64,000 nt of DNA from assembly GCF_006345805.1 (NCBI RefSeq), contig NC_043015.1:15128001-15192000 (forward strand). Reading direction: 5' to 3'. The translations under genes were made by a program, and so were the position numbers. Every line of letters begins with the position of its first letter. The first letter of the stretch is position 1. Below are positions 8,708 to 37,139 of the stretch, in pieces. This DNA is from Octopus sinensis (Eukaryota). The notes under the pieces are model-generated. The model was given only the letters and a program-made list of their open reading frames with translations. It did not search any database and was not told the DNA's origin.

Positions 8708-9006
8708 TTGCAAAATTTGGCAGACTCATTCCCGATTTCTGTTTAGTTGGAGGTATTTACTAATCAATAGAAATATGGCAAAACGTACAGCAAATTCCAA
8801 AATTGAAGATGAACCAGCTGACTTAAAAAAATCAAAGAATGAAAGTCTGGTAGAGAAAATTCAAGAATCTCGCATAAAATGTGCAAAATCTGTTCAGGAT
8901 TTTAAATTCAACAAAAAGCGAGTTCGTTTATTGAATGAAGTGGAAGAATTCCTTGAAGGATCTCAGGGTGTTCTTTATTGGATGGTCCGTGATCAAAGGG
9001 TGCAAG
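8708..9006 (+). CDS. phr: Photolyase exon 2 (internal ATG at 8775; ends [11 protein letters not shown])
   Basis: ORF 8700-9038; donor AAG|GTATGG at 9007. The 5' boundary is inferred from the acceptor TTTCTTCCTTTTTCTTGCTCAG; 8747 is an in-frame alternative. Confidence 0.88.
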
Positions 9007-10506: not shown

Positions 10507-13500
10507 CTTTTACTTGTTTCAGTCATTTGACTGCAGCCATGCTGGAGCACCGCCTTTAATAGAACAAATCGACCGCAGGACTTACTCTTTGTAAGCCTAG
10601 TACTTATTCTATCGCTAAGTTACAGGGACGTAAACACACCAGCATCGGTTGTCAAGCGAAGTGGGGGTACAAACAGAGATACAAACAAACACACACACAC
10701 ACATATCTCTTTTTACTCTCTTTTACTTGTTTCAGTCATTTGACTGCGGCCATGCTGGAGCACTGCCTTTAGTCGAGCAAATCGACCCCAGGACTTATTC
10801 TTCGTAAACCTAGTACTTATTCTATCTCTTTTCCTGAACCGCTAAGTTACAGTAAACAAACCAACATCAGTTGTCAAGTGATGTTGGGGGGGACAAACAC
10901 AGACACACAAACATATATGCACACATACATATATATACATATGTACGACAGGCTTCTTTCAGTTTCTGTCTATCAAATCCACTCACAAGGCTTTGGTTGG
11001 CCTGAGGCTATAGTAGAAGACACTTGCCCAAGGTGCCATGCAGTGGGACAGAACCCGGAACCATGTTGTTGGTAAGCAAGCTACTTACCACACAACCACC
11101 CCTGCACCTATATATATATATACGACGAGCTTCTTTCAGTTTCCATCTACCAAGTCCGCTCACAAGGCTTTGGTTGGCCCGAGGCTATAGTAGAAGGCAC
11201 TTATCCAAGGTGCCACGCAGTGGGAGTGAACCTGGAAACATGTGGTTGGTAAGCAAGCTACTTACCACACAGCCAATCCTGCGCATATATATATATGTTC
11301 ATAAACGGGCTGGTTACACCCACTGGCATAGGCTATGGGCCATGGTCTCACTTGGCTTGTCGGGTTTTCTCAAGTACAGCATATCTCCAAAGGTCTCAGT
11401 CACAAGTCATTGCCTCGGCAAGGACAATATGTGTGTGTGTGTATGTATATATGTACATATACATGCATATATATTCATGTATATGCATGTATATATATAT
11501 ATATATATATATTTATGTATATCCACACATCCACACGAAAATGTACATATACAAAGTCAAGAGTTAATTGTATTAAGTTACAAAAGGCTATTAATATTAT
11601 TATTATTATTATTATTAATAATAATACCAGTAAAAGAATATGTGCATTCCGCCATTCACAATACATATTAGATGGAAAATATCCCATAGAATACATCAAC
11701 AGCATAATATAGTAATATAATAACATAATAATATAATACAATACAATACATTATAGCTCAACAAACATATATAATGAAAAATATTCATTTACATCATAGA
11801 AAAAACCAGAAGTGTGCATGCGTATACATACATACAAATCAGAGTTCTGACGGTGATAGATATTTATCACCGTCAGAACTCTGATTTGTATACACACACA
11901 TGTTTATGCATGTATATTTATGCATATATATATATATATATACATATATGTTTATATATGTATGTATATTTGTATGTGTGTGTGTATATATAGGGAGGGT
12001 TTACGAAAAAAACAAAAGACGAAGACAGGTGGTGTACAAAACAAACAGATGTATTAGTATAACGCTGAGGAATAGAAAAAGCCTTTTACGTTTCAAGCCT
12101 ACGCTCTTCTACAGAAAGGGACACAGAAAAAACAAGGAGAGAAAAAAATGTGTGTAGTGGCTAACGATCTATCATGGCGACTAGTGCCGGAGAGAAGGGT
12201 CAAACACGAGTAGGAAAGTAGGGGAGATAACAAGGTAAAGATGACCCCCAACACAAAAGTGCCCCCAGCACAAAGTTGCGTGTGTGTATAAGAGAGTATG
12301 TATGTGCATGTGAAAGAGGGCTGGTGGTCTGGACGTGTGCGTGTAGGTGTGAAGATGTGAGGATGGGTGTGTGGGTGGTGTGATGTGTAATGTTATATGG
12401 TGTAGTGTGGTGTGGTGTGATGTTGTTGGGGGGTGGGGGAGGTGAGAGTGGGAAAGCACGGGTGTGGTGTGGGTTCGGTTGGGGTAGAGTTGGGGTTTGT
12501 GGGTAGGCAGAGGGTGGGGGTAGATGTGGATAGGATGGAGGGATGGGAAGGATAGGGAAGGTGGAGTAGGGGTGGGTGGGTATGTGAGGAGAAAGAGGAG
12601 GAGAGAAGAGACGGACTTCTTTCAGTTTCTGTCTACCAGATCCACTCACTAGGCTTTGGTTGGCCTGAGGCTATAGTGGAAAACACATGTCCAAAGTGCC
12701 ATGCAGTGGGACTGAATCTGGAATCATGTTCTATAATAATAAAGTTTAATAAATTTAAACATTATCTAAGAATGATCTAGTTTGTTTCATTATAAATCAA
12801 TCAGTTAATATGAGACATACTGTTTTTGCAATATTTATTTATTTTAGATAACTGGGCTATGCTGTTTGCCCAAAGACTTGCTCTTAAAGAAAAGACATCC
12901 CTTCATGTATGCTTTTGTGTGGTGGTTCCATTTCTCGAAGCAACCAAACGACATTATGATTTTTTGTTGAATGGACTGAAGGAAGTTGAAAAGGTTTGTC
13001 CCAATTTTGACTTTTCTGAATTTTGTTTTCAATTATGTTAGAAGTTATTAGTATGAATTTCAATTAAAAACAAGTGTTCAGTTAAATTGTTGCATTGGAA
13101 AGAAGAAAATATAGCAGTTAGATTCAACTTTGTTTGGTCACATGTTTGGTCACATGGAAATCATAAGTTGATCATGTGCATAAATACAATTTCTCTCCAA
13201 TCAACAACTTTTGTTCATATGATAGTCTGGCAGCATGACTAAGACTTTCTGTAAGCAAATCCTACAAATACGGTTCATTTTAGTGCAAAAAGGACAGAGT
13301 GATTCAGTCCTTGGTGGAGTTTGCTCTTGATTTTAGCTGTTCTCACAGCTAGGCGCAATAGGTGAAGAAACATACTACAGCAACATTTGCCTAAATGTTT
13401 TATATGCATTTTGAACGCAGTCAATGAGGGGTCTTATTTTAAATAAGGGATCAAAGTTTGGTTCTTCACGTACAGGGGTACTGCTAGTGTCTCTCACATG

Positions 13501-15713
13501 TAAATATTGGTTCAGTTTCATAAACTGTATTTGGGTCATAATACTGGAAATATACTGATTGCCAAAAGGTTCCTGATTGCTCCAGTAATTTGTAATTATG
13601 GGTAACTGTCTTATACCCATAATAATATCTATGGCAAAAAATGCCCATATTTCGTCTACGGTTGTAGGAAACCACAAGCTATCTTTTTTTCCAGCTTGTT
13701 TACATTCTGTGTAATGATTTGTTTCCGCAGTGATTACTTCAAACAAGCATGCTGGAAAAAATGAAAAGAAAACGTCTAATGGTTTTGCTTCCTGAGAAAG
13801 ACTATGAGTAGACCGTGTCTCCTCAGAAAAATTGTTAATAAAAACATTTTTTAACTTTTTACTCCATTCTGGTGTAAAATCATCCTCGCTGTCTATGCCA
13901 CTGCTTTCAGTTTCTTCAGAATTGCTTTTGGATACAGAAATATCCGATTCATTTTCGTCCACCATGTGCTTTTGCACTTCATTCATTCTTTTCCTCGATA
14001 TCTCGATATCTTCTGTTGAAAAGCCTTCAAATTTGGAATCACTGCTTGATAGCATGAAACTCCTCTCCATTTTCAAAGTTGAAAAAAATTAATGCCGATA
14101 AAAATGTAGAAAAAAATCTTCCAAAATTCACTGAGTTCAAATATCATGCCAAACAATGTCGGACACAATAACTCAACTGTTAGCAAAGTGAAATCACGTG
14201 TTTTAACAAATGTACCAATGACATTTGGGTTCAAATTTACATTTAAATAACAATGGGTTCTCTCGGCCGGGTTGGTCTTATGAACCAAAAAATTTTTGGG
14301 CCAGCTACAGCTGGGTTAGTAATGAAAGAGTTAATCAATGCTACATGTGTTTCTGCACTGGTGGGGAGTTTATAAAGGCTATACCTAATACATAAATCCA
14401 CCAGTGTGTCTTGAGGCTATTTATCTTATTGTCATTATTATTAACGGATCACAGTTAAAAATACATATTATAAGTCATATTAAATAAGAATATGAATACA
14501 AATATAATAAAATAAAAATATATAAATTACAAATTTCTTTTTTAAAAAATTTAAAAATTAAACAAATAAAATGTAAGGCTGTTTCTTTTTGTTCTTTCCT
14601 TAGGAATGCTGCAATTTGGATATTCAGTTCCATCTCTTGAAAGGAGACCCATCTTCTGAAGTATCCAGTTTGGTAAAAGAGTTGAATATCGGTGCTGTTG
14701 TCACAGATTTCAGCCCATTGAGACTTCCTAGAAAATGGTTGACTGATTTAACAGAGAATCTCCCTAAAAATGTTGGCTTGTGTCAGGTTAGACCTATTGT
14801 CCTCAAAATATTTGTAACGAATGTTTAATTAAATTAAAATAGAAATCATTTCTCTCATTACTGAACACTCATTTTACTATATTTCTTTTGTCTTTCAGGT
14901 GGACACACACAATATTGTACCATGTTGGATAACTTCTGAAAAGCAAGAATATGGTGCTAGAACTATCAGGAACAAAATCCACAGTCAAATGTGTAACTTT
15001 CTCACTGAATTCCCTCCTGTCATCAAGCATCCCCACGAAGCCAAAACTGAAGCCAAGGTAATCTTATATATTACTTTATTCTCTTTTCTATTACCTTTGC
15101 ATAGTTTATAATTATATCAGGATTGTTTAAATAATAAATTTGCTCTAATAAAGAGGTTTATAGTAAGAAGGTAGAAGAAAAAAAATGAAAAATGGTATTT
15201 TGTGCTAATTTTTTCCTTATTTTCATGTAGAATCTAAAAATACACAAACTTTGGATATATTTTGGGAAAGTTAATGATGGCTCTTGGCATACACATTTGT
15301 ATTGGAGTTCTTGATTAATTTAAATATGAAATTCTTACAGGAGCTGATTAGAGAAGAGCAGAGTGGATTGAAATGATTTTAGTAAACTATTAGAATTTAT
15401 TTTATGTATACTCAATGCATAGAGGACAAACTTGGGTCATCACATTTTAAAGATATTATTAAGGTGTAATTTATTTTAAACCAAAATTATCATCATGCCT
15501 ACAAAGTCAGAAAACAATACAGCTCCCATGACTTTCGGAAACATTTTTTCACGCTCAGAGTTGCTGAAGCATGGAATAAACTGCCTGCGTCAGTTGTTGA
15601 CTGCCATGACACTGCATCTTTTAAGGCCCTCATGCTTTCCGAAATCCGCCGAAACTTCACCTGATTATATATACACTTTAGATGAGTTGTAGTGCACCTG
15701 AGCACTGTACACA

Positions 15714-15748
<35 letters not shown>

Positions 15749-17347: not shown

Positions 17348-17400
<53 letters not shown>

Positions 17401-18404: not shown

Positions 18405-18455
<51 letters not shown>

Positions 18456-21400
18456 CACGTGTGCATACACCCAAACAACCAAACCCACACACACACACAC
18501 CTTCTGTATTTGTGTATATACAAGGGAGTGCTGAAAAGTTCCTGGCTTTGAGTAAAAGAAAATTTAAGAGAATCAATTATTATTTTATTCAGATTCACAC
18601 ACTTATTGCAGCGGTCCTTCAGTTATACTAATCCCTGTAAAAAGAACTTGGAAAGTTGGGTCTCGAATCAGGCCATTTGGGATACTCTTAAAGCCAGGAA
18701 CTTATCAGCATCCCCTCGTATATTTTCCATTTTTGTTTCAGACACCTGCTACTTCTCATTTCTCTCTAATTCAGAATTCTTCTCACAATCACTTCATTTT
18801 GCAATCAGTATTGTCTTTGGTGTAATTAGTTTTTCTGTACAGTTAGGGCTGGAACCAATGTTACACATCATATTCAGTTTGTCTTCTTTATCTTGAACAG
18901 GCAAACTTGTTTTTTCAAACTGTCTCCTCTCTCTTTAGCCTACAGATTGGAATACAATTATTGGGAAATCTGATACAGACGAGGCTGTCAAACCAGTGGA
19001 CTGGGCTAAACCAGGTACAGCTGCAGGTTATGCGACTCTGGAGAGTTTCTGCAATGAACGTCTGAAACATTTTGCCACAGAACGTAATGATCCTACCAAG
19101 AACAGTTTAAGTAATCTGTCTCCTTGGCTCCGATTTGGTAAGATTTATATTTAGTTATATTTGTAGAAATTTAACTGCAAATTTGGTTTTTCTTTTTTTG
19201 CTGTATCATCATCATCACCATCACCACCATCCTCTTCCTCCAGGGTTGCAGTTGATCTGTCAATCAATGGAACAGCCATGCAAGTGGCTGAGCACTCTAC
19301 AGACACAAGTAGCCTTAATGTAATTTATTTGGGAGATTCAGTGTGACAAAGCTGGCCCTTTGAAATACAGGTGCTTCTCATTTTTGCCAGCTGACTGGAC
19401 TGGAGCAATGTGAAATAAAGTGTCTTTCTCAAAGACACAATGTACTGCCAGGTATTGAACTCATGACCTTATTATCATGAGTTGAATACTCTAACTACTA
19501 AGCCACACACCTTCACACCAAGTATATATACAAACACAAACATAGACGCATACACACAATATATATATTACATATATATATATATATATATTACACACAA
19601 TATATATTATAAAGTATAATTATTTAGCTTCTTTCTAGTTGTTAGAAATTATTCATCCATTGCCATCATAATCATTGGGTAGACCATTTTTTCATGATGA
19701 CATGATGTTGATCTAAACCCTATAGAACCTGTCTGTGAGATTAATATCAGCACTTCATCGATTCTTCCTATGTCTTCCTTGGTCTCCTTTTTTTTACCAT
19801 GTGTTCCATTCACCATCAATTCACCACACCTTATCACCCTCACCCAGCACATATGTATATGCGTTATGGATCTGCTGTCAGTTTATGATAATAAGTATTC
19901 AGTTGTTTGAGTAACCAAATGACCTGATCCTTAAATTAGTATGTGAAGTGGCTGAGTATTCCACAAAAGCATGTACCATTCTTGTAATTTTCAAGGAGAG
20001 TCAAGTAGCCTGACATAGTGTGTGATGAAAGTGGACTTGTGAATCACAGGTACAGTGGGCTTGTCCACAGTTTCTGTTTACCTATTTTTCACTCACGAGG
20101 CTTGGATTGAGTTAAAGCTGTGGTAAAAGACACTTGCCTAAGATGTCATGTGGTGAGATGGAACATTGGGGCCTGGTGATCATGAAATGAATTTTTTAGT
20201 ATTTGACCTTGTTGCATTCATTCTGCCATGCATAATGTAGGTCAAGTGTGTTCTGCTATAGCTCTGGGCCAACTAGAACCTTGTGAGAGAATTTGGTAGA
20301 CTGAAGCTGAAAGAAATTTATTGTACATATGTATTTGTGTATCGTTGTCTAGACATCACATGATGATTGTAAATGAGTTTGTATATGTGTGTGTATATCT
20401 TCATATATATGTGTGTGTGTGTTCTTGACTTGACACCATATGCAAGTTGTGAACAACAGTCACCAGTCTTTTCTGAAAACATGTCCATTTTCAAAGGACA
20501 AAGGGAAATATTTTGTTACTTGGAAACAGGGGAGGGCTGGTGAGATTTTCAGAGAAAATCTGTTTCAGTGAATTTCATCTGACTCATGTAAACATGAAAA
20601 AGTGGATGTTAAAATGATGACAGTGATGATAATGACTTGTTGTGGTTGCTGCTGCTGTTGATGTTGTTTTTAAGGTGGTGAGCAAAAGGCTTAGCAGCAT
20701 TTCATTCGTCTTTATGTTCTGAGTTCAAGTACTGCTGAGGTTGACTTTACCTTTCATTTGTTTGGTGTTGATAAAATAAGTGCCAGTTGAGCACTGGGTC
20801 GATGTAATCGACTTACCCAACCCCTCAATCTTGCTGGCCTTGTGCCAAACTTTGAAATCATTATTATTATTGGGTGGTGAGCTGACAGAATCATTAGTAC
20901 ACTGGGCAAAATATTCAGCAGTATTTTGTCCGTCTTCACTTTCTAACTTCAAATTCTGCTGAGGCCAACTTTGCCTTTCATCCTTTTGGGCTCGATAAAA
21001 TAATTACCAGCTATGTACCTGGTCAATGTAATTGGCTATCCCTCTCCCCTAAATTTCAGTCCTTGTGCCTATAGTAGAAAGGATTATTATTATTATTATT
21101 ATAATGCAATGAGCTGACAGAATTGTTAGCATGCTGGACGAAATGCTTAGCGGAATTTTGTCCTTATGTTCTGAGCTTAAATTCCACTGGGGGTGACTTT
21201 GCCTTTCATCCTTTTGGGGTTGATGAAACCCCCTTTGTGTCTGTGTTTGACAACCAGTGTTGGCTTGTTTACATCCTTGTAACTTAGTGATTCGGCAAAG
21301 GGACCAATAGAATAAGTACTAGGCTTAAACAAAAAAAATATGTGTTGGTGTTGATTTGTTCAACTAAATCCTTCAAGGCACTGTCCCAGCATGGCCACAG

Positions 21401-22285
21401 TCAAATGACTGAAACAAGTAAAATATAAGTGTATAAATTAGTGTGTTGACCTAAAGTACTTTATTGAGTCTCTTTATTTTAAATTCAGTGGGAGCCATTC
21501 AGTAAAGAGAAATTGATAAAATATGTATCTGGCATAAGTACAGATATTTAGTGATCAAAATAATCAATAAAAACACCTAAAGGTGTGCTCCAGCATGACC
21601 ACATTTCAAAAAGTGGAACCAGTTAAATAATATTAAAATTCTGTTCAAATATCAATGAAATACATTCCAATTACTTTTGGTTATTCATCATTCTGTAAAC
21701 ACGTTTCATACCTCTCCTTTATTGTTTGTCCTCCTTAAATGTTCTCGTTTCTTTATATAATAGGTCACATATCTCCACAAAGATGTATACTGGTTGTTAA
21801 GAAATTCCAGAAATCTCACAAAAATAGTGTTGATGCATTTGTTGAAGAGGCTGTTATACGCAGTGAGCTGGCAGATAATTACTGCTATTACCAGAAGGAC
21901 TACGACAATATAAATGGTAGGATTTGAGTTTTTTTTTATCATTGATTCTGATTGAGTTCACATAATGATCTTAAATCTATAAAACCTATCTCTTTGTATC
22001 TCAGGAGCTTATGAATGGGCTCGGAATAGCTTGAAGCAGCATGCTAAGGACAAACGAGAATACATCTACTCAAGGAAAGAGTTTGAAGAAGGCAAGACTC
22101 ATGATCAACTCTGGAATGCTGCCCAAGTAAGAATATGTTTATGTTTAATATTTTTTAGTAAAATATTAGGCTGTGAGCTGGCAGAATCATCAGTACGCTG
22201 GGCAAAATGCTTAGCAGCATTTTGTCCGTTTCTACATTCTGAGCTCAAATGAGCAACAATAGAAAGGAAAAAGAGAAAGAGGTTG

Positions 22286-22333
<48 letters not shown>

Positions 22334-25300
22334 AAATGGTGAAGGAGAGAAAAAAGGAATTAGAGAAGGATGGGGTAGAAAACAGTATAGAGTAGAGTTG
22401 TATCAAAAAGGTTAAGAGAAACTTACTTAGAAATGGATGCATGGCGTTCAGTTTAATAATATATATATATGTATAGACACACACACAACAGCTTCTTTCA
22501 GTTTCTTTGTACCAAAACTACTCAAGGCTTTGGTTGGCCTGAGACTATAGTTAGAAGATGCTTGCCCAAGATGCAACACAGTGGGACTGAACCTGTTCTT
22601 ACCACACAACCATGCCAGCACCTATGTATATTTATTAATTTTGTCCAATTTCAAGAGAAATTGCTACTAGTTTCCTTTGAAGTCTTCTCTGAACAGTCAG
22701 ATGTCAGTTTACCTGGAAAGAAACAATGCAGTTATTAATATGATGAGTTGCAAATAATGCATGAAACGATCTCACAGCACTAGCATCACTCCTTCGTAGT
22801 CAATCTGTGACCTGTTCAGCCCACACTCATAAGTATCTTTTGGCCTAGTATTTCTTCTCATATGTTATTAATGATCGTCTAATTTCTTTGTTGAAGGTTA
22901 TCCTGATTATCAACCCAGTTTAGCTAATTTAAACATAGAAACTCTGTTATCTTTAGTCTGAGTGGAAGTTTGCTGTATCAAAGATTCACTTGTAGACATT
23001 TCAAGAAAATCATTGATGACTCTTTTACTCTTTTTACTTGTTTCGGTCATTTGACTGCGGCCATGCTGGAGCACCGCCTTTATTCGAGCTAATCGACCCC
23101 AGGACTTATTCTTTGTAAGCCTAGTACTTATTCTATCGGTCTCTTTTGCCGAACCGCTAAGTTACAGGGACTTAAACACCAGCATCAGTTGTTAAGTGAT
23201 GTTGGGGGGACAAACACAGACACACAAACAACATATACACACATTCATATATTTTTTTTTTTACTTGCTTCAGTCATTTTGACTGCGGCCATGCTGGAGC
23301 ACCACCTTTAATTGAGCAATCGACCCCAGGACTTATTCTTTGTAAGCCCAGTACTTATTCTATCGGTCTCTTTTGTCAAACCGCTAAGTGATGGGGACAT
23401 AAACACACCAGCATCAGTTGTCAAGCAATGCTAGGGGGACAAACACAGACACAAACATACATGCACATACATATATACAACGGGCATCTTTCAGTTTCTG
23501 CCTACCAAATCCACTCACAAGGCTTTGGTCGGCCCGAGGCTATAGTAGAAGACACTTGCCCAAGGTGCCATGCAGTGGGACTGAACCCAGAAGCAAGCTA
23601 CTTACCACACAGCCACTCCTATGCCTACATTTTATAAAGTTCAGTTATATTGGTATGGATAGGATACTGCACACTTGTCCACCTCTGTCAGTTATATTTG
23701 TTTATACTGATATTTCTTCAATGCTAGAATTGGTTGTGTATATAATATTGACCCCAGGTCAGAGGTGCTATTTTGCAGATTGTTTTGAGAAGTTAATCTG
23801 TGAATGTTTTATGTTATTTAAAACTATTTCTTTATTTTCAGATACAACTTGTCAAAGAAGGTAAAATGCATGGCTTTCTAAGGATGTATTGGGCGAAAAA
23901 AATTCTAGAATGGTCAACTACTCCTTCTGAAGCACTGGAAATTGCCATATTCTTAAATGACCGATATTCTTTGGATGGAATGGATTCCAATGGATATGTT
24001 GGTATGTATTTATCTTTGATAATATCTTCAGCTTTACAAAAGAGAAAAATGGTGAAATGTAATACACCTGTCATATCAGGAATACAAGAATTTCTTACTG
24101 ATAATATGTTTGGAACTTAAACACATATTGAACTTGAATCCTGAAAACCTATTTTATGTATCAGTTTTTATTGGCTGGTTTATAACATAAGGTGGCAATA
24201 TAGTAAAAGCACAAAATAGAGGAAATAGTCAAAATAGCTCATTTATTAAGGCAGTGGGTTGATAGAATTGTTAGATTGCCAAATAAAATGCCTTGGGGCA
24301 TTTGTTCTGGCTCTTTGTATTCTGGGTTCAAATAGCACTGATGTCAGCTTTGCTTTCCACACCTTCAGAGTTTCATAAAATAAAGTAACAATCAAGTATT
24401 TTAGTTGATTTTAATCAACTGTTGATTTCTACCATTGTGCAATAGTCTAGCACATCACAATACGTTTTCGTTGCTGTTGCTGCTTCTTCCTCTTTCTCTT
24501 AGTGTTCACTATTCCATCCATGCATGCTCTGACATAATTTGTGGGGGATGATTTTGTACAACCAGATGCCCTTCCTGTTGCTATCCCATGGCCAGACATA
24601 TTTTACATGGAAGACTAGAAACAAGCGATATGCTTGTTTACAACCATCACGATGTCAAAAGACTGATACATACGCACACACAGACACACATATACATGTG
24701 ACAAGCTTCTTCCAGTTTTCGACTATCAAGTTTACACAAAGCTTTGATCAGCCCATTTCTATAGTAGAAGACACTTGCTCAAGGTGCTGTATAGTGGATC
24801 ACCACATGGTGAGGAAGCAAGCTTCTTAACCGCACAGCCTTGCCTGCACTTCCCACATTGTAGGACCAAAATCCCTACACAACCATAGGGCCCCCAGGAC
24901 AGTTGAAGTCTCACACTGGTTGATGTTATCTGATATTACTGGAACTGTAACACACAGAGTCACACAATAGACACACCCACATGCTGATTCATTCAGGTCA
25001 GATCAAATGGTTGATAATAATGGTTTCAAATTTTGGCACAAGACCAGCAATTTTAGGGAGAGTGGGTAAGTTGATAACATTAACCCCAGTGTTCAACTGG
25101 TACTTATTTTATCGATCCCAAAAGGATGAAAAGGCAGAGTCAACCTCAGCAGAATTTGATCTCAGAATGTAAAGACAGACAAAATGCTGCTAAGTATTTT
25201 ACCTGGCATGCTAACAACTCTGCCAGCTAAACTTGTATTGTTTCATAATGACTAAATCAGAAACTGCAACTCTAGGGTCTGACTCTGGTTACAGCACAAA

Positions 25301-26040
25301 AAAATGTTATACTTATCTACAAGGGTAGATAAACTCAACAAAGAGTCAACAGCAAGCTATCAAACCAGGGGCCCCATTAGGGCTTTTGAGTCTAGTACTA
25401 CTGACTCTCTTTGGACACACTGGTGTGAGAAGTCCCTTGATAAGTGTGAGGGCTATGCATGGTAGCTTGAATCAGTTGTGGGTTTTCCTTTTGTGGCATT
25501 GTTGAAAATGACAAATACATGAAATTCCTAATTAAATACTGTTGATTGATTTTAGACTCATTATTCACAATTGCTGTCTCTTTGTAGGGTGTATGTGGTC
25601 TGTTTGTGCCATTCATGATCGGGCCTGGGGGGAAAGAAACGTCATTGGCAAAATTCGGATCATGACATATCAAGGCTGCAAGCGGAAGTTCGATGTCGAT
25701 TCCTACATTACCAAATATTGTTCCAAGAATTCTAAAAAAATATAAAGCCCAGCTCCCTTTCACTTCCATTTTTGTTCAGAACGTTTTTCAGGAATAAATT
25801 TTTCTTAGTTGCTGCTTTTTGGTTTTATGTTTGTCAGTCAGCTTTTAAAAGAGTCCTTTTGAAATGCATAATGGCTAGTCCTGTATATTCATTTGAAGTT
25901 GATTGTTATTAAAACTTCTTTTCATGCAAGATAAATTACATCCTTTCTTTTGGTCTTTTTTTTTCTGTAATATTCTATTACAATAGCTTAAAGCTGTAAA
26001 TAATTTTAGTATCATCATCATCATCATCATCATCATCATC

Positions 26041-26087
<47 letters not shown>

Positions 26088-29000
26088 TTAGCATCCGTTT
26101 TCCATGCTAGCATGGGTTGGACGGTTCAACTGGGGTCTGTGAAGCCAGAAGGCTGCATCAGGCCCAGTCTGATCTGGCAGTGTTTCTACGGCTGGATGCC
26201 CTTCCTAACGCCAACCACTCCATGAGTGTAGTGGGTGCTTTTTACGTGCCACCCGCACAGGAGCCAGATGGAGCTGGCAAACGGCCACGAACGGATGGTG
26301 CTTTTACGTGTCACCAGCACGGGGGCCAGGCGAGGCTGGCAACGGCCACGAACGGATGGTGCTTTTTACGTGTCACCGGCACGGAGGTCAGTCAGGGCGG
26401 TGCTGGCAACGGCCATGATCGGATGGTTCGCTTACTTGTTTCCGGCACTGGCATCACAGCCGCAATTTCCATTGATGTTGATCGACTTCGATTTTGGTTC
26501 TGCTTTCTGATATCTGATTTGATTTGATTTTTTTTTTTTGATTTTCACTTGCCTCAACGGTTCTTCACAAGTGGAGTTTTGTGTCCCAAGAAGGAAAGGT
26601 ATGTATAAGTCGACTGGCTACATACCAGGTAGAGGCCACGAGTTATGGTCTCACTAGTCTTGCCGGGTCTTCTCACGCACAGCATACTTCCATAGGTCTC
26701 GGTCTCTAGTCATTTCCTTGGTGAGACCTAAGGTGCAAAGGTCATGCTTCACCACCTCGTCCCAGGTTTTCCTGGGTCTACCTCTTCCACGGGTTCCCTC
26801 AACTGCTAGGGTGTGGCACTTTTGCACACAACTATCTTCAGCCATTCTTGTCACATGACCATACCAGCGCAAACGTCTCTCTTGCACACCACAACTGATG
26901 CTTCTTAGGTCCAACTTTTCTCTCAAGGTACTTACACTCTGTCGATTATGAACACTGACATTACACATCCATCGGAGCATACTGGCTTCATTTCTTGCGA
27001 GCTTACACATATCCTCAGCAGTCACGGCCCATGTTTCACTACCATGTAGCATGGCTGTACGTACACATGCATCATACAGTCTGCCTTTTACTCTGAGTGA
27101 GTGGCCTTTTGTCACCAGCAGGGGTAAGAGCTCTCTAAACTTTGCCCAGGCTATACTTACTCTAGCAGTTACACTTTCAGCACACCCACCCCCGCTACTG
27201 ACTTGGTCACCTAGGTAGCAGAAGCTATCAACTACTTCTAGTGTGTCTCCCTGGAACGTGGTAGAAGTTGGTCTCTGCACATTTCCAGTGTTTATTGCTC
27301 CTGAGTATCTGCCACAGACAAAAACTATTTTCCTAGTTAGCCTTCCTTTGACATTGCTGCAACTCTTATGTGTCCATAGCTTACACTTGGTGCACCTTAT
27401 AGAGTTTCTACCTACACCTTTTTTACATATTGAGCAGGGCCATCTACCTGAAGTCGTTTGTGATTGGTCTACCTTCCTACTTATTAGGACTTTGGTTTTG
27501 GCTAGGTTGATTCTAAGGCCCCTCGATTCTAATCCTTGCTTCCACACCTGAAACTTCTCCTCCAGTTCTGATAGTGACTCAGCAATTAGAGCAAGGTCAT
27601 CAGCATAGAGGAGCTCCCAGGGGCATCCTGTCTTGAATTCCTCTGTTATTGCCTGGAGGACTATGATAAATAGGAGGGGACTGAGGACTGAACCTTGGTG
27701 GACCCCAACCTCTACCCAGAATTCTTCACTGTACTCGTTGCCAACCCTCACCTTACTAGCAGCGTCTCTGTACATGGCTCGCACAGCTCTCACTAACCAT
27801 TCATCTATCCCTAGTTTCCTCATTGACCACCAGATAAGGGATCGGGGAACCCTGTCGAAGGCTTTTATCTTTGGCTAGGTATTTCTCCTGCAGCTGTTTT
27901 ACCAGGAATATAGCATCAGTAGTACTTTTCCCTGGCACGAACCCAAACTGCATCTGATCTAAGCTAACTCTCTCTCTCTAATTAGTTGGGCTATAACCCT
28001 CTCCGTAACCTTCATTACCTGATCCAGCAGCTTGATACTCCTGTAGTTATTTGTATCTAGAGCGTCACCTTTACCTTTGTAGCAGTTGACTATTATGCTG
28101 CTACACCAGTCATTGGGTATGACTCCTTCGTGTATCACCTGGTTAACTATACGGGTGACTAGGCTATAGCTGACACTACCAGATATTTTGAGCATCTCTG
28201 CAGTAATTCCTGATGAGCCTGGGGCTTTCCCTGTTTTCATGCTTGTAATTGCCTTAACTACTAAGGAACTGTCAACTCGGATTGCTGTTCCCTCTGTTGG
28301 GTCGACATTCGGCAGACTCTCTTTATCCCATTCATTTTCCTCATTCAGCAACCTTTCATAGTGGCGTCTCCAAACCTCTCTCTTTGCATCCTCATTTAGC
28401 GCAAGTGAACCGTCATCCTTGCAAACACATTTCTCTCCTACCACGTCACGATTCTCTCTCATACAATGTCTTGCAACATGAAATACTTCAAGTCTTTCAT
28501 CTTCACAGCGCAGAACATTGGCAAATTTTTTCTTATCTGCTTCCCCTCTGGCTAAATACACCTGCCTCCTAGCTTCCCTTCTGGCAGTCTGATACACTTC
28601 CCTGCTACCACCGTTCTTCCAGTCCTTCCAAGCCTCAATATTATTCCACCACCACGTTATTTTGGGTCTTGAGGGGACTTTGCACCAGCCACAGATCTGG
28701 TCAGTGGCTTTCAGCAGGTTGTCCCTCAGAAGCGTCCAGTTGTCTTCTACCCTATGTGTAGCTATACCCCCTTCTATTTTGTCAAAGGCTTCAAGTAACA
28801 TGTCTCTAAATCTCTGTCCATTCGCAGGGTCTTTAAGCTTCCAGACCCTTCTTCTCCATGTTGGTCGTCTTCTAGTCGTCCTCTTAGTCTTGATCCTAAA
28901 GTCACTAACTACCAGTCTATGTTGTGGGGTGCATTCTTCGCCTGGGAAGGTTTTGGCATTTATAAGCAGCCATCTTTCCCTTTTTCTGGCAAGGATGTAG

Positions 29001-30321
29001 TCGATTTGGCTAGTATGCCGGCCCGATCGGTAGGTGACCAGGTGGCTTGTCGGTTTCCTGAAGTTAGTGTTGCAAACCATAAAACTATTCGCATCGCAGA
29101 ACTCCGGCAGCCTGCTTCCCTCCTCGTTGCGGGAACCATAACCGTAGCCTCCATGTACGCCATGGAAGCCCCCAGCATGTCGTCCAACATGCCCATTGAA
29201 GTCACCAGCTACAAAGAGAAGGTCCCTGTCGTTCGTCAATGAGGTGGTCTGCAGTAGGGTGTCATAGAAACTGTCTTTCTGTCCATCGGGTAGCCCTGGC
29301 TGAGGGGCATAGGCTGATATAATGGTTGCTAATCTATGATGAAGCACTATTCTAATCTTAAGTATTCTGTCACTTACTCTGATTACCTCAAGTACCTTAT
29401 CTACTTACTCTGATTACCTCAAGTACCTTGAAGAAAAGTGTTTTAGATATTCAGGAAAACTGCGATTTTAAGCTGAGTGAGATTGGAAGGTGTGAGGTTT
29501 TTTTTTTTTTTAATTCTCTAAGTGATTGCTAATAAGTTAAGTGAAATAACTTTAACAATCAAAACATTGTTTTGCTAGAAGATTTATAACAACATTGATG
29601 AAAGAAATGATACAAACCAGCTACATTCATTTTGTGTCAGTATCAACACCATGGACTTGGTATGCAAAACGGTAGTTCTTCATTTTATGTTTTTGCATCT
29701 TAAAATCTTAAAAACATAGATGAAAACATCATCATCATCATCACCATCCTCCCCCTCCTCCATCCATTTTCCATACAGGCATGGGTTGGACTGTTTAACA
29801 GGAGCTGGTAAGGCCAGGAGTTGCACCAGGCTCCATTGTCTGTTCTGGAATGATTTCTATGGCTGGATGCCCTTCCGAATGCCAACCACTCCACAAAGTG
29901 TACTGGGTGCCTTTTATGTGGCACCAGCACCAAGACATAAATAATATCTTGTGATAGCTGCTCTCAATACCTTATATTTGTTTTTTTTTTAATTCTTGAA
30001 GTTGTATGACTGCTGCCAGATCTTCAAACTGCTCTGTAACAATTTAAACTATATATGTATATAATGTTAGAGGAGAGAATTGCAATACGGATTCTTCAAG
30101 CCAAGCCAAGTGGTAGGAGACCTGAGGGTAAACCAAGGACAAGATAGATAATATCCATAGGCATAGTAGTGGCTGTGTGGTAAGTAGCTTGCTTACAAAC
30201 CACATGGTTCCGGGTTCAGTCCCACTGCATGGCACCTTGGGCAAGTGTCTTCTACTATAGCCTCGGACCGACTAAAGCCTTGTGAGTGGATTTGGTAGAC
30301 AGAAACTGAAAGAAGCCTGTC

Positions 30322-30364
<43 letters not shown>

Positions 30365-33300
30365 GCACCATCCGTTCGTGGCCGTTTGCCAGCTCCGTCT
30401 GGCACCTGTGCGGGTGGCACGTAAAAAGCACCCACTACACTCACGGAGTGGTTGGCGTTAGGAAGGGCATCCAGCCGTAGAAACACTGCCAGATCTGACT
30501 GGGCCTGATGCGGCCTTCCGGCTTCACAGACCCCAGTTGAACCATCCAAGCCATGCTAGCATGGAAAACGGATGCTAAATGATGATGATGATGATGATGA
30601 TGATGATATATGTATGTGTGTGTATATGTTTGTGTCTGTTTGTCCCCCCAACATGGCTTGACAACTGATGGTGGTGTGTTTATGTCCCTATAACTTAGTG
30701 GTTCAGCAAAAGAGACCAATAGAATAAGTACTAGGCTTACAAAGAATAAGTCCTGGGGTTGATTTGCTCGACTAAAGGCAGTGCTCCAGCATGGCCACAG
30801 TGAAATGACTGAAACAAGTAAAAGAGTAAAAGAGTCTGAGTTGGTCAGCCAGAAAGTTTAATAACAGTTGCTTCTGATAGGACCCTATGGAGGAGGTGTC
30901 TGAGGACTCTATCCCCACAATCATCTTGGGACTTGTGGATGGAGTAGATGAATGGATGAATGTGTGTGTGTGTGGATGGATAACTTGACAGATTTAGAAT
31001 ACAAGTATGACTGTGGTTAGGAATTTCACTGTGCAGCTTCGTGGTTCTAGATTTGTTTCTATTATTCTTTGAGCAAATGTCTTCCAGCTTAACCTCTGAA
31101 TGACTAATACTTTAGAAGTGAAATTTAGTTGATTTGGTAGGGGGAGGTAGTAGAACTTGTCTTTTCTATATGTGCATACTTACATAGACAGGCAGGCAGG
31201 TTTAATAACATCATAATTAACAGCTAAAAGGGCAAAGAGAGAGGAAACAGCAGAGATATTAAACTATTGGTTTAGTTTATGAGAGTTTGTGAAAGAGTTA
31301 TAGTGTAACGAACTGGGATGAGAATAACAGTTGCAATGCAGTTTGGTTTTGTTCCATGAAGATACATTGCCAATGAGATCTTCCTTTTTGAAAAGGCTGC
31401 CGGGTAAGTATCTAGCTAGGGGCAAGCATCTAGGTTTGTTGATCTAGAAAAGACTGTCAACAGGGTTCCATCCTCTGTGATCTGGTACTCAGTGAAGAAG
31501 CTTGGGGTAGATGAATAGTTTATGAGAGCTGTATAGGCCATGTGAGAGTAATGTGAGAGTGTGTAATGGGTATAACAATGAATTCTGTGTAAAGTAGGGA
31601 TACATGAAGGCTTAGTCTTCAGCCTGCTCCTGTTCATTTTTATTCTTTTAGCCATAACAAAGGAGTTTAAGGTTGGCTGCCCATGGAAACTTCTTTGTGT
31701 AGATAACCTTTGTCTTATAGTCAGATCAGTTATAGAATTAGAAAAGAAATTCCAGGTGTAGAAACAAAAGCTAAATTATTAGTAACTAGGAGAGAAAATA
31801 GGACCCCTGTACCATCAGAGAAATGACCATCTGTTTTAAGCAGAAAAGGATAGATAAGAATTCCATAAGGTATATGCTGTGTGAATTATGGACACATGAG
31901 GTGTAGTGAGAATAATAAAAGCATGAAGACAGGGAAGGAAGACTTTTTATGCACAGAAGCTATAAGTACTTAGGCACATGTGAAATAAACACTTTCCTTT
32001 GACTCTGTCAAAGTATTGATAGGTTCTGTTATCTTGGGGACCTAATTAACTGTTGGGGTGGGCTTTCAGAAAGCATGGTAGCCAGAGTAAGAGCTGGTTG
32101 AAAATAGTTCTGAGAACTATTATCTCTGCTTGTAAGAAAGGATGAAAGGCAGATTGTATATGAAGTGCATTTCTGCATGGTAGTGAGGCATGGGCTCTGA
32201 ATGAAAATTTGATAAGACTAGAAAGAGATGAAGCAAACATGGCCCATAAGATGTTTAACATTAGTGTACATTAATAATGGAGTCCAAATAAGCTGATAGA
32301 AAAAACTGGGCATGAGAGGAATCATGTAGCATACAAGAGAGAAGACTGGTTGGTTTGGGTGTGTGCTTTGTATGGGGGAGGACAGCTCTATGAAGAAGTG
32401 ATGCATGTTCAAAGTATTTCATTTGAACATGCAAAGTATGCTGCAGAAGAAGAAGACTTGGCACAAATATGTATATCATTCTGCTGTGAAATCAGGGTTT
32501 AGGATCAAATTAATCAGTTGCATTGTTATCTAACAATTCATCAGAGATTGCCATACAGTAGGGATTCTCAGAGGTCCATGTACCCCTAAAGGTACTTATA
32601 AATTTTAGGGGTATGTGAGGTTTGTAAAATCACTGGAATTTTGAAGTAATTACAACCAACAAGATGCAACTTGTGTGTCTAGAAAATATGTGGAGAGCCT
32701 TTTGCTGTTTCCATCCGAATGAGAGTTTACAGCTTCTCTGAAACTGCATCATTAAATCAAATGAAATTAATTTCTTACATAAGTACAAGGCCAGAAATTC
32801 TAGAGGAGCAAACAATTGATTATATTGCCTCTGGTACTTTGACTGGTCCTTATTGACCTTGGAAGGCAAAGTTGACTATGGTGGGATTTGAACTTTTCAA
32901 ATTAAATTAATAAATTATACCTGTCTTATCTGTTGTATGGTATCCAATCATTTTCTCTATATACTTTATACAGGGTCTGCCAGTTGTACTGGACATGACA
33001 AAGGGGTACGTAAGCAGGAAATGTTTGATATTCCTGCATTAGTGCCACCTAACTGGAAGCTGTTGCTATCCACCATGACAAGAAGGGATCCTAAGGTCCT
33101 CAAATTCATGTTTCATGATTGCATTCCTGCTTCAGTGGAACTGTTAGCAGACAACCCAGTTTAGTATGTATGTACTTGCAACTATATTTAAGTACTTCTA
33201 CAAACATAAAAATGAGCTTGGTACATAATCTGCCATGCTTTTAGAAAACTTCAGTATCAACTATGAGGACAAAACAACAGGCATTGTGTCCATCACTCCT

Positions 33301-35251
33301 AAAAGTAACCGATTGCTTTGAGTTAGAGTAAAGCAATAAGAGGAGAATTTTCTTGCTGTTATTCTGATCGATTTAGGGTTAGGGTAGCTGCTACAAGTCT
33401 CGTACATGTGAGTAGGACTGGTAAAACTGAATGTTCCAATGCACATATTTGGTCCTACAAAAGAGCAAACGCTTAGTTTGTGTAACTTAAATGAAGAGGC
33501 AAACATTTGGGTGACAGCAACTCTATGCAAAGTAATCATTCCAAGCAAAGTCATCAATGCCAAAAGAAAAAAAAAACAGCCAATAAAATTTGATTTGGTG
33601 ACAGATGCAGCAGAGCTTTCAGAAAGGAGTATAATTTCTTCTGTCAATTTAAGATGAGTAAGAATAATAGTGTAGAGAATTAATGAAAAGCACAGTTACT
33701 GATTTTAGAGGGGGAGGGGAAGCACTGACATAAGTGTCAGCATGGTTGTGTGGCAAGAACTTTGCTTCCCAACCACATGGTTCTGGGTTCAGCCCCACTA
33801 TGTGGCACCTTGGGCAAGTGACTTTTTATTATAACCTCAGGCTGACCAAAGGTTTGTGAGTGGAAGTGGTAGATGGAAACTGAAAGAAATCTGTCATTGT
33901 AAATATACATATGTGTGTGTGTGTCTTTGTGTATGTGTTTGTCCCCCTACCAGCACTTGACAACCAGTGTTGGAGTGTTTCTCCCTGTAACTTAGCAGTT
34001 CGGCAAAGGAGATTGATAGAATAAGTACCAGACTTTGCAAAAAATAAGTACTAGGGTCAATAAGTTCAACTAAAATTCTTCAAGGTGATGCCCCAGCATG
34101 GCTGTAGTCTAATGATTGAAGAAAGACCAAAACAATGGTGGAGTATGATAAACTGTCTGGGTGAACAACCACCTATGGCTATTATCAAATGCAGTGCATC
34201 TGCCTGCTCAACAACAGTAGAAGACAAAGTCAACATTTTCTACAAGAGTTTTGCTGCGAGCATTCTTAGTGAGGCAGCTACAAGAGTTTTTAGGTAAGAG
34301 CAAACCCACTACATGTTTTATTTGTTGACTGGAGAAGAACTTTTGACAGAAAATTCTTCTCTAGCTTGGTGGTCACTAAGAAAACTATGTGTAGATGGAT
34401 AGCATGTGGGAGTCATGTACAGTGGGGCTCTCAGTAAAATGAAAATTAGCAATGTATTTGGTGATAAATTTTGCAGGTAGATATGTATCCATAAGGGTTC
34501 TGTTCTCAGCCTCCTGTTATGGCTTGGAAATGATAGCTACCACAGGTGACTTTCTCCTATATTCTGAGCAGAATTACTTGGACCTTTGCTTAAGGACTTT
34601 TAAAGCCCCTTGTTATTTCTTCCAAGTCCTGGTGGGCCTATTAAAAAATTTTTTTTTTTTATTACTTTTTATTATTTTTTGTGATAGGAGGTGGAATTTG
34701 AACTCAAAACATACAGAACTATAGTAGAGGCTATAGTAGAAGACACTTAAGGTGCCACACAGTGGGATTGAACTCGGAACCATGTGGTTGGTAAGCAAGC
34801 TACTTACCACACAGCCACTCCTGCGCCTACATTCTCTACATTCTTAGTTCAAATTTCACCTGGGTCAACTTTGTCTTCCATCCTTTTGGGGTCAATAAAA
34901 TAAGGAATCAGTTGAGCATCTAGGATTGATATAATCGACTTACCCACTCCCCTGGAGTTGCTGGCCTTGTGCTAAAGTGTGAAATCAATATTTGTTTAGT
35001 AACAATAAAAGTTGCTAAAAAATTGACATGTTTGGTTTTGTTTGTTGTTCAACATTTTACATTTCAACACTGATCTTTACTTTGGCAACATCTTTTCTCT
35101 ATTTCTAGGTTGTATGTGGTCAGTTTGTGGAATCCATGACATGGGTTGGGCTGAACGACAGATTTTCGGCAAAATTCGTTACATGAACTTCAATGGATGT
35201 AAACGTAAATTTGATGTCAACCGATTTATAATGCGTTATAAGAGCAAGTAA
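8775..35251 (+). CDS. phr: Class II CPD photolyase (deoxyribodipyrimidine photo-lyase), spliced gene with two alternative last exons
   Basis: From ATG 8775, the exons sum to 1512 nt (503 aa) with exon 10A or 1497 nt (498 aa) with exon 10B; with putative exon 1, 539 or 534 aa. Class II motifs present: [81 protein letters not shown]. All introns are GT-AG. Confidence 0.95.
10502..11284 (-). mobile_element. Cluster of family A SINE modules (two tail modules, two head modules)
   Basis: Reverse complements of the tail (...GACTGAAACAAGTAAAAGA) at ~10502-10920 and of the head (GTGTGGTAAGTAGCTTGC...CCTTGGGCAAGT...GAAAGAAGCC) at 10946-11108 and 11123-11284. Confidence 0.8.
12848..12993 (+). CDS. phr: Photolyase exon 3 (DNWAMLFAQ...GLKEVEK)
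   Basis: Acceptor TTTTAG at 12847, donor AAG|GTTTGT at 12994; phase consistent with neighbouring exons. Confidence 0.95.
13375..14330 (-). mobile_element. piggyBac transposon 5' fragment with truncated transposase (PGBD4-like N-terminus) in photolyase intron 3
   Basis: 233-aa ORF 13375-14076: acidic N-terminus, then F.SFFP..I..ETN.Y, W.PTT.DEI.AF...[25 protein letters not shown]. Element end AGTAATGAAAGAG|TTAA at 14330/14331-34. The DDD core is absent. Confidence 0.85.
14604..14786 (+). CDS. phr: Photolyase exon 4 ([12 protein letters not shown]...VGLCQ)
   Basis: Acceptor CCTTAG at 14603, donor CAG|GTTAGA; contains VVTDFSPLR. Confidence 0.95.
14899..15057 (+). CDS. phr: Photolyase exon 5 ([10 protein letters not shown]...KTEAK)
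   Basis: Follows the 112-nt intron 14787-14898; donor AAG|GTAATC; contains [10 protein letters not shown]. Confidence 0.95.
15494..15745 (+). mobile_element. CR1/L2-type LINE 3' fragment with (ATT)n tail
   Basis: [35 protein letters not shown]...* (15494-15664), followed by a 3' UTR and ATT repeats. Confidence 0.75.
18939..19137 (+). CDS. phr: Photolyase exon 6 (PTDWNTII...[19 protein letters not shown])
   Basis: Hand translation is open (absent from the ORF track because it has no start codon); acceptor CTTTAG at 18938, donor TTG|GTAAGA at 19138. Confidence 0.95.
21764..21916 (+). CDS. phr: Photolyase exon 7 (GHISPQRC...[17 protein letters not shown])
   Basis: Acceptor TAG at 21763, donor ATG|GTAGGA; contains [14 protein letters not shown]. 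Confidence 0.95.
22005..22126 (+). CDS. phr: Photolyase exon 8 (GAYEWAR...[10 protein letters not shown])
   Basis: Follows the 88-nt intron 21917-22004; donor CAA|GTAAGA. Confidence 0.95.
23842..24001 (+). CDS. phr: Photolyase exon 9 ([24 protein letters not shown]...[10 protein letters not shown])
   Basis: Acceptor TTTCAG at 23841, donor TTG|GTATGT at 24002 (phase 1); FAD-binding region. Confidence 0.96.
25588..25745 (+). CDS. phr: Photolyase terminal exon 10A ([52 protein letters not shown])
   Basis: Acceptor TTTGTAG at 25587, phase 1, open to TAA 25743-45; AATAAA 48 nt downstream. Confidence 0.85.
25793..25798 (+). terminator. Candidate polyadenylation signal for exon 10A
   Basis: AATAAA followed by U/GU-rich sequence (TTTTCTTAGTTGCTGCTTTTTGGTTTTATGTTTG). 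Confidence 0.55.
26011..29347 (-). mobile_element. 5'-truncated, recently disabled RTE-clade LINE between exons 10A and 10B
   Basis: APE endonuclease ([21 protein letters not shown]) in 27959-29347 and RT ([17 protein letters not shown]) in 26654-27823. The frame is broken by a 2-nt slip in an AG run (~27970) and a deletion removing the usual LYLAFVDMEK before KAFDRVPR (~27865). The 3' UTR has ~62-bp tandem units and a (TGA)n tail at 26011-26086. Confidence 0.92.
30160..30834 (+). mobile_element. Composite SINE: family A head + (TA)n + RTE 3'-end module + (GAT)n + family A tail
   Basis: Head 30160-30323; (TA)n 30324-30359; RTE module 30361-30579; (TGA)n 30580-30606; tail ~30625-30834. Confidence 0.8.
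31240..32410 (+). mobile_element. Old RTE LINE RT remnant
   Basis: Broken MQFGFVP, FVDLEK..NRVP..VIW..KKLGVDE, GGLSES..ARVRAG, LHGSEAW motifs. Confidence 0.65.
34260..34560 (+). mobile_element. Old RTE LINE RT remnant
   Basis: Broken [29 protein letters not shown] motifs. Confidence 0.55.
35109..35251 (+). CDS. phr: Photolyase terminal exon 10B ([47 protein letters not shown])
   Basis: Acceptor CTTTTCTCTATTTCTAG at 35108, phase 1, open to TAA 35249-51; matches the animal class II C-terminal consensus as I know it. Confidence 0.9.
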
Positions 35252-36165: not shown

Positions 36166-37139
36166 TAAGAAAATTTTAATTTTTTTATGTTTTTGGTAGG
36201 TAAGTGTTATTTTGTATTTGCTCCTATCTAGAAATCAAAGGAAATGACTACTTTTCCCTTCAAACTTTGCTTTTGTGACCTAGACATCAATGTTTTGAAA
36301 CTCACCTATTTTCCATTACATTTCAGACAGATTCAGCACTGAGCTGCTGAAGCAGAAATATCATTATAGCAAATATTCTGCTCAATACCACAAATTTGCT
36401 CATCAGTTGCTTGAGCATGTCCCTTAGTGGCTGACAGTATGTGCATCTCTGATCATGAGCAGGAGTAGTGGAGGAGTATTATAACCATGTGTTGCAAGGG
36501 ATTCTTTTGGGGTTTGAATAAATGTAACAAAAGCAAAGTTTGAAGGAAATATTAACAGTTTTTCATACTTTCTTGGGATAAGCAAATAGGAAATAACAGT
36601 TGCTACCAAAGGACAAAAATCACGTTACACAGTGTTATCAGTGATACTTATGTAACTGGCTACTGGTGATTTAGCAGCTGAAACAACAGGTATTTATGTG
36701 TGAGAAGTTGACATGATGTTTATATTTTTCTACCTGGATTATTGAAACACCACATTTATAAGTTAATAACGACATGTATTCTTTTAAGTAGAAACTTCAT
36801 TATATTTCATTTGTAACTGCATGCTGGGAAGATGTTTGTCTCTGATGTTACTGTTTTGCATTATGAGCTTTGCTTTTATTTTGATTCTACAGTCATTAAT
36901 TACTTTTGTTTATCATATCATTACTTTTTAAAAACAATTAAAATTCTTTTGAATGTAATTCATAATTACATGTTTGCTCAGGGAAATGGAACTCCATATT
37001 AAACTTTTAATTTACTGTTGACAACCACATCTGAAGGTGTCGGTTCCAGATAGTGAGCCGAGTATTTTTTTTATAACACAATAAAAGCTTGAAATAAACT
37101 TCATATAAATTTTAGCTTGTCTTGTCTTTGCAAAGAAGT

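Follow-up and report, generated by a model that had tools for sequence, protein, structure and literature searches.

In the 64,000-nucleotide stretch of Octopus sinensis DNA analysed here (RefSeq assembly GCF_006345805.1, contig NC_043015.1, positions 15,128,001 to 15,192,000 of the forward strand; this whole stretch is called the window), we found a class II cyclobutane pyrimidine dimer (CPD) photolyase gene, whose eight common coding exons (8775-24001) are followed by two homologous last exons, termed 10A (proximal) and 10B (distal). The results described below make it probable that this is a single-copy gene whose last coding exon was duplicated in tandem before the octopus-cuttlefish split, giving alternative last exons and two full-length photolyases. 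A tandem-duplicated alternative 3' exon is a known kind of event, found here in a photolyase, and no new mechanism is involved.

The exon borders were set from the GT and AG sites around six-frame matches to the TIGR00591 profile, which gave the following gene model.

8775..9006, plus strand: coding exon 1, with the ATG at 8775; TIGR00591 positions 2-62; GT donor after the exon end.
12848..12993, plus strand: coding exon 2; six-frame TIGR00591 match and conserved DNA island versus Argonauta.
14604..14786, plus strand: coding exon 3; six-frame TIGR00591 match and conserved island versus Argonauta.
14899..15057, plus strand: coding exon 4; six-frame TIGR00591 match and conserved island versus Argonauta.
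18939..19137, plus strand: coding exon 5; six-frame TIGR00591 match and conserved island versus Argonauta.
21764..21916, plus strand: coding exon 6; six-frame TIGR00591 match and conserved island versus Argonauta.
22005..22126, plus strand: coding exon 7; six-frame TIGR00591 match and conserved island versus Argonauta.
23842..24001, plus strand: last common exon, the eighth coding exon (called exon 9 in the original prediction); phase-1 donor GTATGT at 24002.
25588..25745, plus strand: coding part of the proximal terminal exon 10A; split Gly and 51 amino acids; acceptor ...ctctttgtAG; own stop; RefSeq isoform X1.
25793..25798, plus strand: AATAAA poly(A) signal of 10A, 48 nt past the 10A stop.
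35109..35251, plus strand: coding part of the distal terminal exon 10B; split Gly and 46 amino acids; acceptor ...ctatttctAG; own stop; RefSeq isoform X2.
36517..36522, plus strand: first canonical AATAAA past 10B, 1266 nt past the 10B stop.

The last common exon (23842-24001) ends in ...AATGGATATGTTG, directly followed by GTATGT; its translation ends in ...DSNGYV and leaves one base (G) spare for the next exon. This exon also encodes the residue aligned to Asn403 of the Methanosarcina mazei photolyase and two conserved Trp residues (W415 and W422). The open reading frame of the spliced product comprises 503 amino acids with 10A and 498 with 10B, and the translated products are letter for letter the O. 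sinensis RefSeq proteins XP_029648244.1 (isoform X1, 10A) and XP_029648245.1 (isoform X2, 10B); both isoforms are already in public annotation. The original prediction, which had been made from the sequence alone, had placed a phase-1 donor at 24002 and two intact last exons 9.4 kb apart, each with its own acceptor and stop and 10A with a nearby AATAAA. All of its coordinates hold, and the acceptors, the stops and the AATAAA were read directly in the sequence.

A six-frame search of the 2.7-Gb assembly with TIGR00591 found each photolyase exon once and the last exon twice, 10B scoring 78.7 bits and 10A 72.9 bits, and the only other matches in this search were a weak one to a cryptochrome/photolyase gene that is unrelated and one no better than chance (E = 4). 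Since only the last exon of the class II photolyase was found twice genome-wide, 10A and 10B result from an exon duplication and not from a second gene, as had been predicted; the same search bears out the claim that no further photolyase exons lie between them. The two exons have 60-64% protein identity and find each other by tblastn within the window with E = 2e-20. From the Cys onward, 27 of the 44 residues are identical, or 28 of 45 when the split Gly (GGG versus GGT) is included, and 12 of the 23 degenerate codons among identical residues differ synonymously (13 of 24 with the split Gly). Both hand counts of the prediction, 28/44 and 13/24, were reproduced with the split Gly included, except that the aligned total is then 45 and not 44. 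The motifs HD..W.ER, GKIR.M and GCKRKFDV were found in 10A and 10B alike, in line with the prediction, and both exons start at the same split Gly codon after AG and in the same phase, a property by which tandem duplicated exon substitutions are recognised. Two further loci of the cryptochrome/photolyase family were seen in the genome, one with an uninterrupted 563-amino-acid frame (C4:23825643-23826092; PF00875, 151 bits) and one with multiple exons (C16:34222918-34240727).

Against the whole TIGR00591 profile, the 10A form scored 704.9 bits and the 10B form 715.6 bits (cut-off, 550.05), with profile positions 2-453 of 453 covered, and the PF00875 N-terminal domain scored 98.9 bits. The octopus protein showed 46-47% identity with the class II enzymes of M. 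mazei (2xry) and rice (3umv; E = 1e-133 to 1e-143). AlphaFold models of the two forms had predicted local distance difference test (pLDDT) values of 90.0 (10A; predicted TM-score, 0.89) and 89.7 (10B) and contained the same secondary-structure elements, namely a helix at 447-458, a loop at 459-478 and two helices at 479-496 in the last segment. The 10A model was closer to class II structures (rice 3umv, TMq 0.87, root-mean-square deviation 1.6-1.8; M. mazei, TMq 0.80-0.84, E ~1e-48) than to class I structures (TMq 0.63-0.69, E ~1e-17); its superposition on the rice and M. mazei enzymes gave TM 0.83-0.87. Judged from these scores and models, the 10A and 10B products both score, and are predicted to fold, as class II CPD photolyases.

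The terminal exon aligns without gaps to M. mazei residues 418-462 (18-residue tag offset applied) and supplies Trp421, the loop that joins helices alpha17 and alpha18 and intrudes into the bubble, and the last two helices. The aligned stretch includes Asp428, Arg429, Trp431 and Arg441, and the prediction that the last exon encodes the DNA-contacting part was thereby confirmed. In the M. mazei enzyme, Trp421 stacks on the flipped-out dimer, and the alpha17-alpha18 loop constitutes the bubble-intruding region. A conserved 'bolt' is made up of Asp428, Trp431 and Arg441, the last of which bridges to the intra-lesion phosphate, and Arg429, for which Gln, Met or His can stand in, touches unpaired adenines directly and through water (PMC6126647). 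Like MmCPDII (2xry, 2xrz and 5zcw) and OsCPDII (3umv), the octopus enzyme keeps the residues corresponding to M. mazei Arg256, Glu301, Met379, Trp421, Asp428, Trp431 and Arg441, which are R289, E335, M413, W455, D462, W465 and R475 in both isoforms, together with Asn403; M. mazei Trp305 is replaced by Arg339 in octopus, as it is in rice. It also keeps W415, W394, W422 and Y379, the counterparts of M. mazei Trp381, Trp360, Trp388 and Tyr345, which we take to be the class II electron-transfer residues. Because all four lie in common exons, both isoforms have them. Unlike octopus, the M. mazei and rice enzymes have a single C-terminal sequence, and no alternative form was present among the PDB entries searched.

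10A and 10B differ at 18 of the 45 aligned positions, including 429, 430, 432, 435-437 and 442-446, the last of these beside Arg441, and in the basic tail. At the bubble-loop position 429 (octopus 463), 10A has Arg and 10B has Met, and most animals have Gln. The HDRAWGER of 10A is identical to that of the M. mazei photolyase, and a plant homologue likewise has the IRIMTY of 10A, so no feature of this exon appears disabling. When the AlphaFold models of the two isoforms were compared, no difference was found, the bubble loop (462-474) being of low confidence in both.

Selection on each copy was evaluated from Nei-Gojobori counts over 43 codons with Fisher tests, as follows.

Octopus versus Argonauta, 10A: nonsynonymous 10.5/103.8; synonymous 23.5/25.2 (saturated); Fisher p = 5e-16.
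Octopus versus Argonauta, 10B: nonsynonymous 8.3/106.2; synonymous 13.7/22.8; Fisher p = 7e-8.
Octopus versus Sepia, 10A: nonsynonymous 16/104.5; synonymous 21/24.5; Fisher p = 1e-10.

Between Octopus and Argonauta, the proportion of nonsynonymous sites changed (pN) in 10A was 0.10 and that of synonymous sites (pS) 0.93, and the ratio of nonsynonymous to synonymous rates (dN/dS) for 10B was ~0.07. In each copy pN thus lies far under pS, and these counts indicate strong purifying selection on 10A and 10B both; purifying selection on both copies had been predicted.

The same arrangement was found by tblastn on the orthologous loci of Octopus vulgaris, Octopus bimaculoides and Argonauta hians, in each of which 10A is followed by 10B, both intact with AG acceptors and stops and spaced by ~9.3 kb, 6.4 kb and 3.5 kb, respectively. 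A C2H2 zinc-finger gene lies on the minus strand a few kb downstream of 10B in Argonauta (L015 24788-26591), O. bimaculoides (L016 38148-39176) and O. vulgaris (L017 61448-62900), and the orthology of the loci is supported by the conservation of this neighbour. The intact 10A-type exon of A. hians is at L015 16220-16372, 3.5 kb 5' of 10B; the third-position GC content of the terminal exons is 0.74 and 0.60 in Argonauta versus 0.53 and 0.37 in Octopus. When the O. sinensis and Argonauta loci were compared, the only colinear conserved DNA islands were the coding exons, 10A (75% identity) and 10B (82%), and the other matches were dispersed repeats. The 10B protein is identical across the three Octopus species. 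Since protein identity between Octopus and Argonauta is 83% for 10A and 85% for 10B against 85.4% for the common core, the terminal exons have evolved neither faster nor slower than the rest of the protein.

These comparisons also bear on whether 10A could be a pseudo-exon or an annotation artefact, or whether the second copy could derive from a misassembled paralogous or haplotype segment. The one observation to be set in its favour is that a young retrotransposon and repeats lie between the exons. The arrangement, however, recurs in four independent assemblies of four species, 10A is under strong purifying selection, its type is used in Sepia mRNAs, and there are no other photolyase exons elsewhere in the genome. 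Moreover, 10A and 10B are not haplotypes, because they are saturated at synonymous sites with respect to each other. We therefore regard both the pseudo-exon and the misassembly explanations as effectively excluded. The retrotransposon itself is a non-long-terminal-repeat element of ~3.7 kb on the minus strand (window 26012-29747), with open reading frames for a reverse transcriptase (26654-27874; RVT_1, 67 bits) and for a product whose match to an endonuclease is weak and scores under the Pfam cut-off (27959-29404). A 99% identical copy is present in O. vulgaris and none in O. bimaculoides, and for this reason the element, which lies in the last intron of the 10B isoform, is considered a young insertion. 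Two inverted copies of a ~258-nt repeat flank it (window 26049-26306 and 30360-30616), and related copies resembling short interspersed nuclear elements occur across the Argonauta locus.

The age and polarity of the duplication were examined with sequences from other taxa. Over 228 class II photolyases, the consensus of the segment, GIHDQGW[AK]ER.[VI]FGKIR[YF]MNY, is nearly invariant. 10B, which keeps the animal consensus, departs from this sequence essentially only by Met for Gln, and 10A carries derived residues shared with Sepia (Arg-Ala for Gln-Gly, Gly for Ala, Ile for Tyr and Thr for Asn), with Ile for Phe also present in the 10A of Octopus and Sepia. In a maximum-likelihood tree of the 46-residue segment, the 10A types of Octopus, Argonauta and Sepia formed one clade (support 100/99) whose stem measured ~1 change per site, and the 10B sequences of Octopus and Argonauta were placed among ordinary animal sequences. 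Oyster, clam and chiton have the intron at the same position (NGYV-G | GCMWS) and one intact terminal exon each, as examined over the gene and 10 kb downstream. A search with the 10A end found 10A-type proteins only in Octopus and in the Sepia cluster, the well-scoring P0134 having a canonical C-terminus. When a profile of six cephalopod exon peptides was run against genomic contigs to look for terminal-exon fragments of squid, cuttlefish or Nautilus, the 10A-type signature occurred in none of the at least 120 matches listed, which were fragments unnamed or from other taxa.

Since both types are present in octopods, Sepia mRNAs are of the 10A type and the other molluscs have one exon, the duplication predates the octopus-cuttlefish split. 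The claim that it is old is thus upheld by the same exon order in three Octopus species and Argonauta and by the 10A type at the C-terminus of Sepia mRNAs. The simplest reading of these sequences would be that the exon was duplicated in tandem in the cephalopod lineage ahead of the octopod-decapodiform split, that the proximal copy then changed rapidly and that both copies were long conserved afterwards. According to cephalopod molecular clocks, the octopod-decapodiform split dates to ~270 million years ago.

Capture of 10A from a foreign photolyase was considered as its HDRAWGER is the archaeal motif, and was rejected as unnecessary: 10A agrees in phase and start with 10B and with the single mollusc exon, and every 10A substitution is found scattered in other eukaryotic class II enzymes. 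DNA-level proof on this point is prevented by the saturation of synonymous sites. In the chiton Liolophura sinensis, the last intron (L019 21465-22082) contains, in tandem, three partial and decayed copies of the 3' half of the exon before it, one of them with a stop, as well as a broken terminal-exon fragment. Exon-scale tandem duplication has therefore also occurred here in chiton without being kept, and these decayed copies show the look of unselected exon duplicates, in contrast to 10A and 10B. The 'photolyase' P0015 of Armadillidium nasatum (696 amino acids) is a C-terminal half-copy fused to a full copy, which accounts for its inflated scores and points to a tandem gene duplication, or to an assembly or model error, in this isopod.

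The two forms would arise as described below. The common donor at 24001/24002 would pair with the proximal acceptor at 25588, and the transcript would be cleaved after the AATAAA at 25793; alternatively, 10A would be skipped and the acceptor at 35109, 9.4 kb further on, would be used. The choice of the last exon would thus be a competition of splicing with cleavage and polyadenylation at the proximal site, and its outcome would be photolyases of 503 and 498 amino acids with a common antenna domain, flavin adenine dinucleotide pocket, Trp chain and most active-site residues, and with a different last segment. The original prediction called the exons mutually exclusive. In the strict sense they are not, because both carry stops, are 3'-terminal and are not flanked by common exons; 3' exons are excluded from strict mutually exclusive splicing and classed as 'tandem duplicated exon substitutions' instead (PMC9741552), and the proper term here is alternative last exons.

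The same pair of X1 and X2 isoforms is annotated in O. bimaculoides, and the annotation of O. vulgaris contains the 503- and 498-amino-acid forms and a 542-amino-acid form in which the 10B end is combined with another N-terminus. In that annotation the O. vulgaris gene spans ~44 kb, and an upstream alternative first exon may exist. In the O. vulgaris genome work, PASA was used to add alternative forms on the basis of Iso-Seq and RNA-seq assemblies (PMC10700109). The annotation suggests that octopus uses both junctions (24001>25588 and 24001>35109). In cuttlefish, intron-less RNA-seq contigs from many runs, one of which (SRR25114244) is Sepia esculenta larval RNA-seq, encode a 500-amino-acid photolyase that is 68-69% identical to that of octopus and has a 10A-type C-terminus; all five of the full-length members of the Sepia 90% cluster (41 contigs) have this end. 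A search of the literature on class II photolyases for exon duplication, alternative splicing or last exons, or cephalopods found no paper describing the two forms. A study of Sepia officinalis reported no CRY45/photolyase-clade sequence in cephalopod transcriptomes; this is a different clade, and class II photolyase was not treated there.

Several observations weigh against a gene that makes two functional photolyases by alternative last exons. The use of both exons in octopus is taken from third-party gene models, and among Logan transcript contigs there is none on record that encodes either exact full-length octopus isoform. A 10B-type cuttlefish form was absent among the 41 assembled Sepia contigs, and the Argonauta protein on record ends in 10B, the 10A form not being annotated there; in any one lineage, a copy may thus contribute little or go unused. 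O. sinensis and O. bimaculoides differ in 10A by four nonsynonymous changes and one synonymous change and in 10B by none and three, counts that are too few to test and that hint at weaker recent constraint on 10A. In addition, the Argonauta 10A has no canonical poly(A) signal within 648 nt of its stop, and the known essential contact residues are identical in 10A and 10B. Because of this identity, and because position 429 tolerates Gln, Met or His (PMC6126647), a biochemical difference between the isoforms is hypothetical.

The transcript record and the recent changes in 10A are what would be expected if the copies had been sorted by lineage, with 10A settled in cuttlefish and mainly 10B in octopods, the other copy being present in traces or not at all and on its way out: only 10A-type transcripts were found for Sepia, only the 10B form is annotated in Argonauta, and four amino-acid changes in 10A against none in 10B separate two close Octopus species. 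Yet 10A is intact, with acceptor and stop, in all four octopod genomes, and its isoform was modelled independently in three Octopus annotations. Between Octopus and Argonauta its synonymous sites are saturated and only ~10% of the nonsynonymous sites have changed, whereas an unused exon would have decayed, as in chiton. Such sorting is thus improbable.

A different alternative arises from the 3' ends. The AATAAA of 10A lies equally far from the stop in O. vulgaris and O. bimaculoides, so that a signal at 48 nt is kept in three Octopus species, and Sepia 10A-type mRNAs also have near signals, 62 and ~106 nt past the stop; as the first canonical signal of 10B is at 1266 nt, the 3' untranslated region of 10B is predicted to be much longer than that of 10A. 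The two proteins may be equivalent, with selection keeping a choice between a very short and a >1.2-kb 3' untranslated region for the control of mRNA stability, translation or localisation or for microRNA control; the coding part, as it includes an essential C-terminus, would have had to be copied together with the 3' end. The identity of the essential DNA-contact residues and the fact that both forms score and fold as class II enzymes are consistent with this explanation. Against it, the short-untranslated-region signal is not conserved in Argonauta, and 10A has a long stem (~1 change per site) followed by conservation across coleoids, with derived changes of F to I, Y to I and N to T at near-invariant positions. 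Because of this long stem and subsequent conservation, 10A looks like a fixed protein-level shift and not like neutral drift of a redundant copy. We consider purely 3'-end selection rather unlikely, though a serious contender.

With alternative last exons that yield two photolyases as the preferred reading, the isoforms may hold the DNA bubble differently, act in different substrate contexts or, by way of their unlike basic tails, be localised differently. More specifically, but only tentatively, one gene might provide two lesion-recognition modes, in which the Arg429 loop of 10A would contact unpaired purines as in the archaeal enzyme and the Met429 loop of 10B would not. The isoforms would then differ in the CPD context (TT versus C-containing), the DNA form (duplex, single strand or chromatin) or the compartment, and would be deployed by tissue or light.

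Tandem duplicated exon substitution was reportedly first described by Kondrashov and Koonin in 2001. The octopus case resembles the known ones in that the exons are adjacent and homologous with the same phase and boundaries, the isoforms are alike except for one homologous stretch, and the duplication is ancient and under purifying selection. Of 236 such events in human, 77 are swaps at the C-terminus (Martinez-Gomez et al., Genome Biol Evol 2022, PMC9741552). Unlike the known substitutions, the octopus case concerns a DNA-repair photolyase of a cephalopod, and the swap covers a substrate-contact loop and not a tail, a coiled coil or a membrane helix. It is also like alternative last exon or intronic polyadenylation switches, as splicing to the distal exon would have to compete with a proximal exon that brings an acceptor, a stop and a poly(A) signal of its own. 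In most such switches, however, the proximal exon provides an unrelated or truncated tail, whereas 10A is a full homologous replacement, and neither octopus product is therefore truncated.

Photolyases are textbook single-product repair enzymes. The octopus gene offers a natural comparison of two DNA-gripping surfaces on an identical catalytic core, encoded by cDNAs that differ in ~50 codons, and keeps the Arg and Met versions of position 429 side by side since before the octopus-cuttlefish split. Published structural work describes this position and its neighbours as tolerant yet important for stabilising the unpaired bubble. That cuttlefish express the derived 10A version matters for cephalopod photolyase phylogenies and for expression work. 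If the two recognition modes are true, nature would have run a 'loop swap' experiment on the bubble-intruding region for 270 million years, and the gene would be the first photolyase with a regulated switch of its substrate surface.

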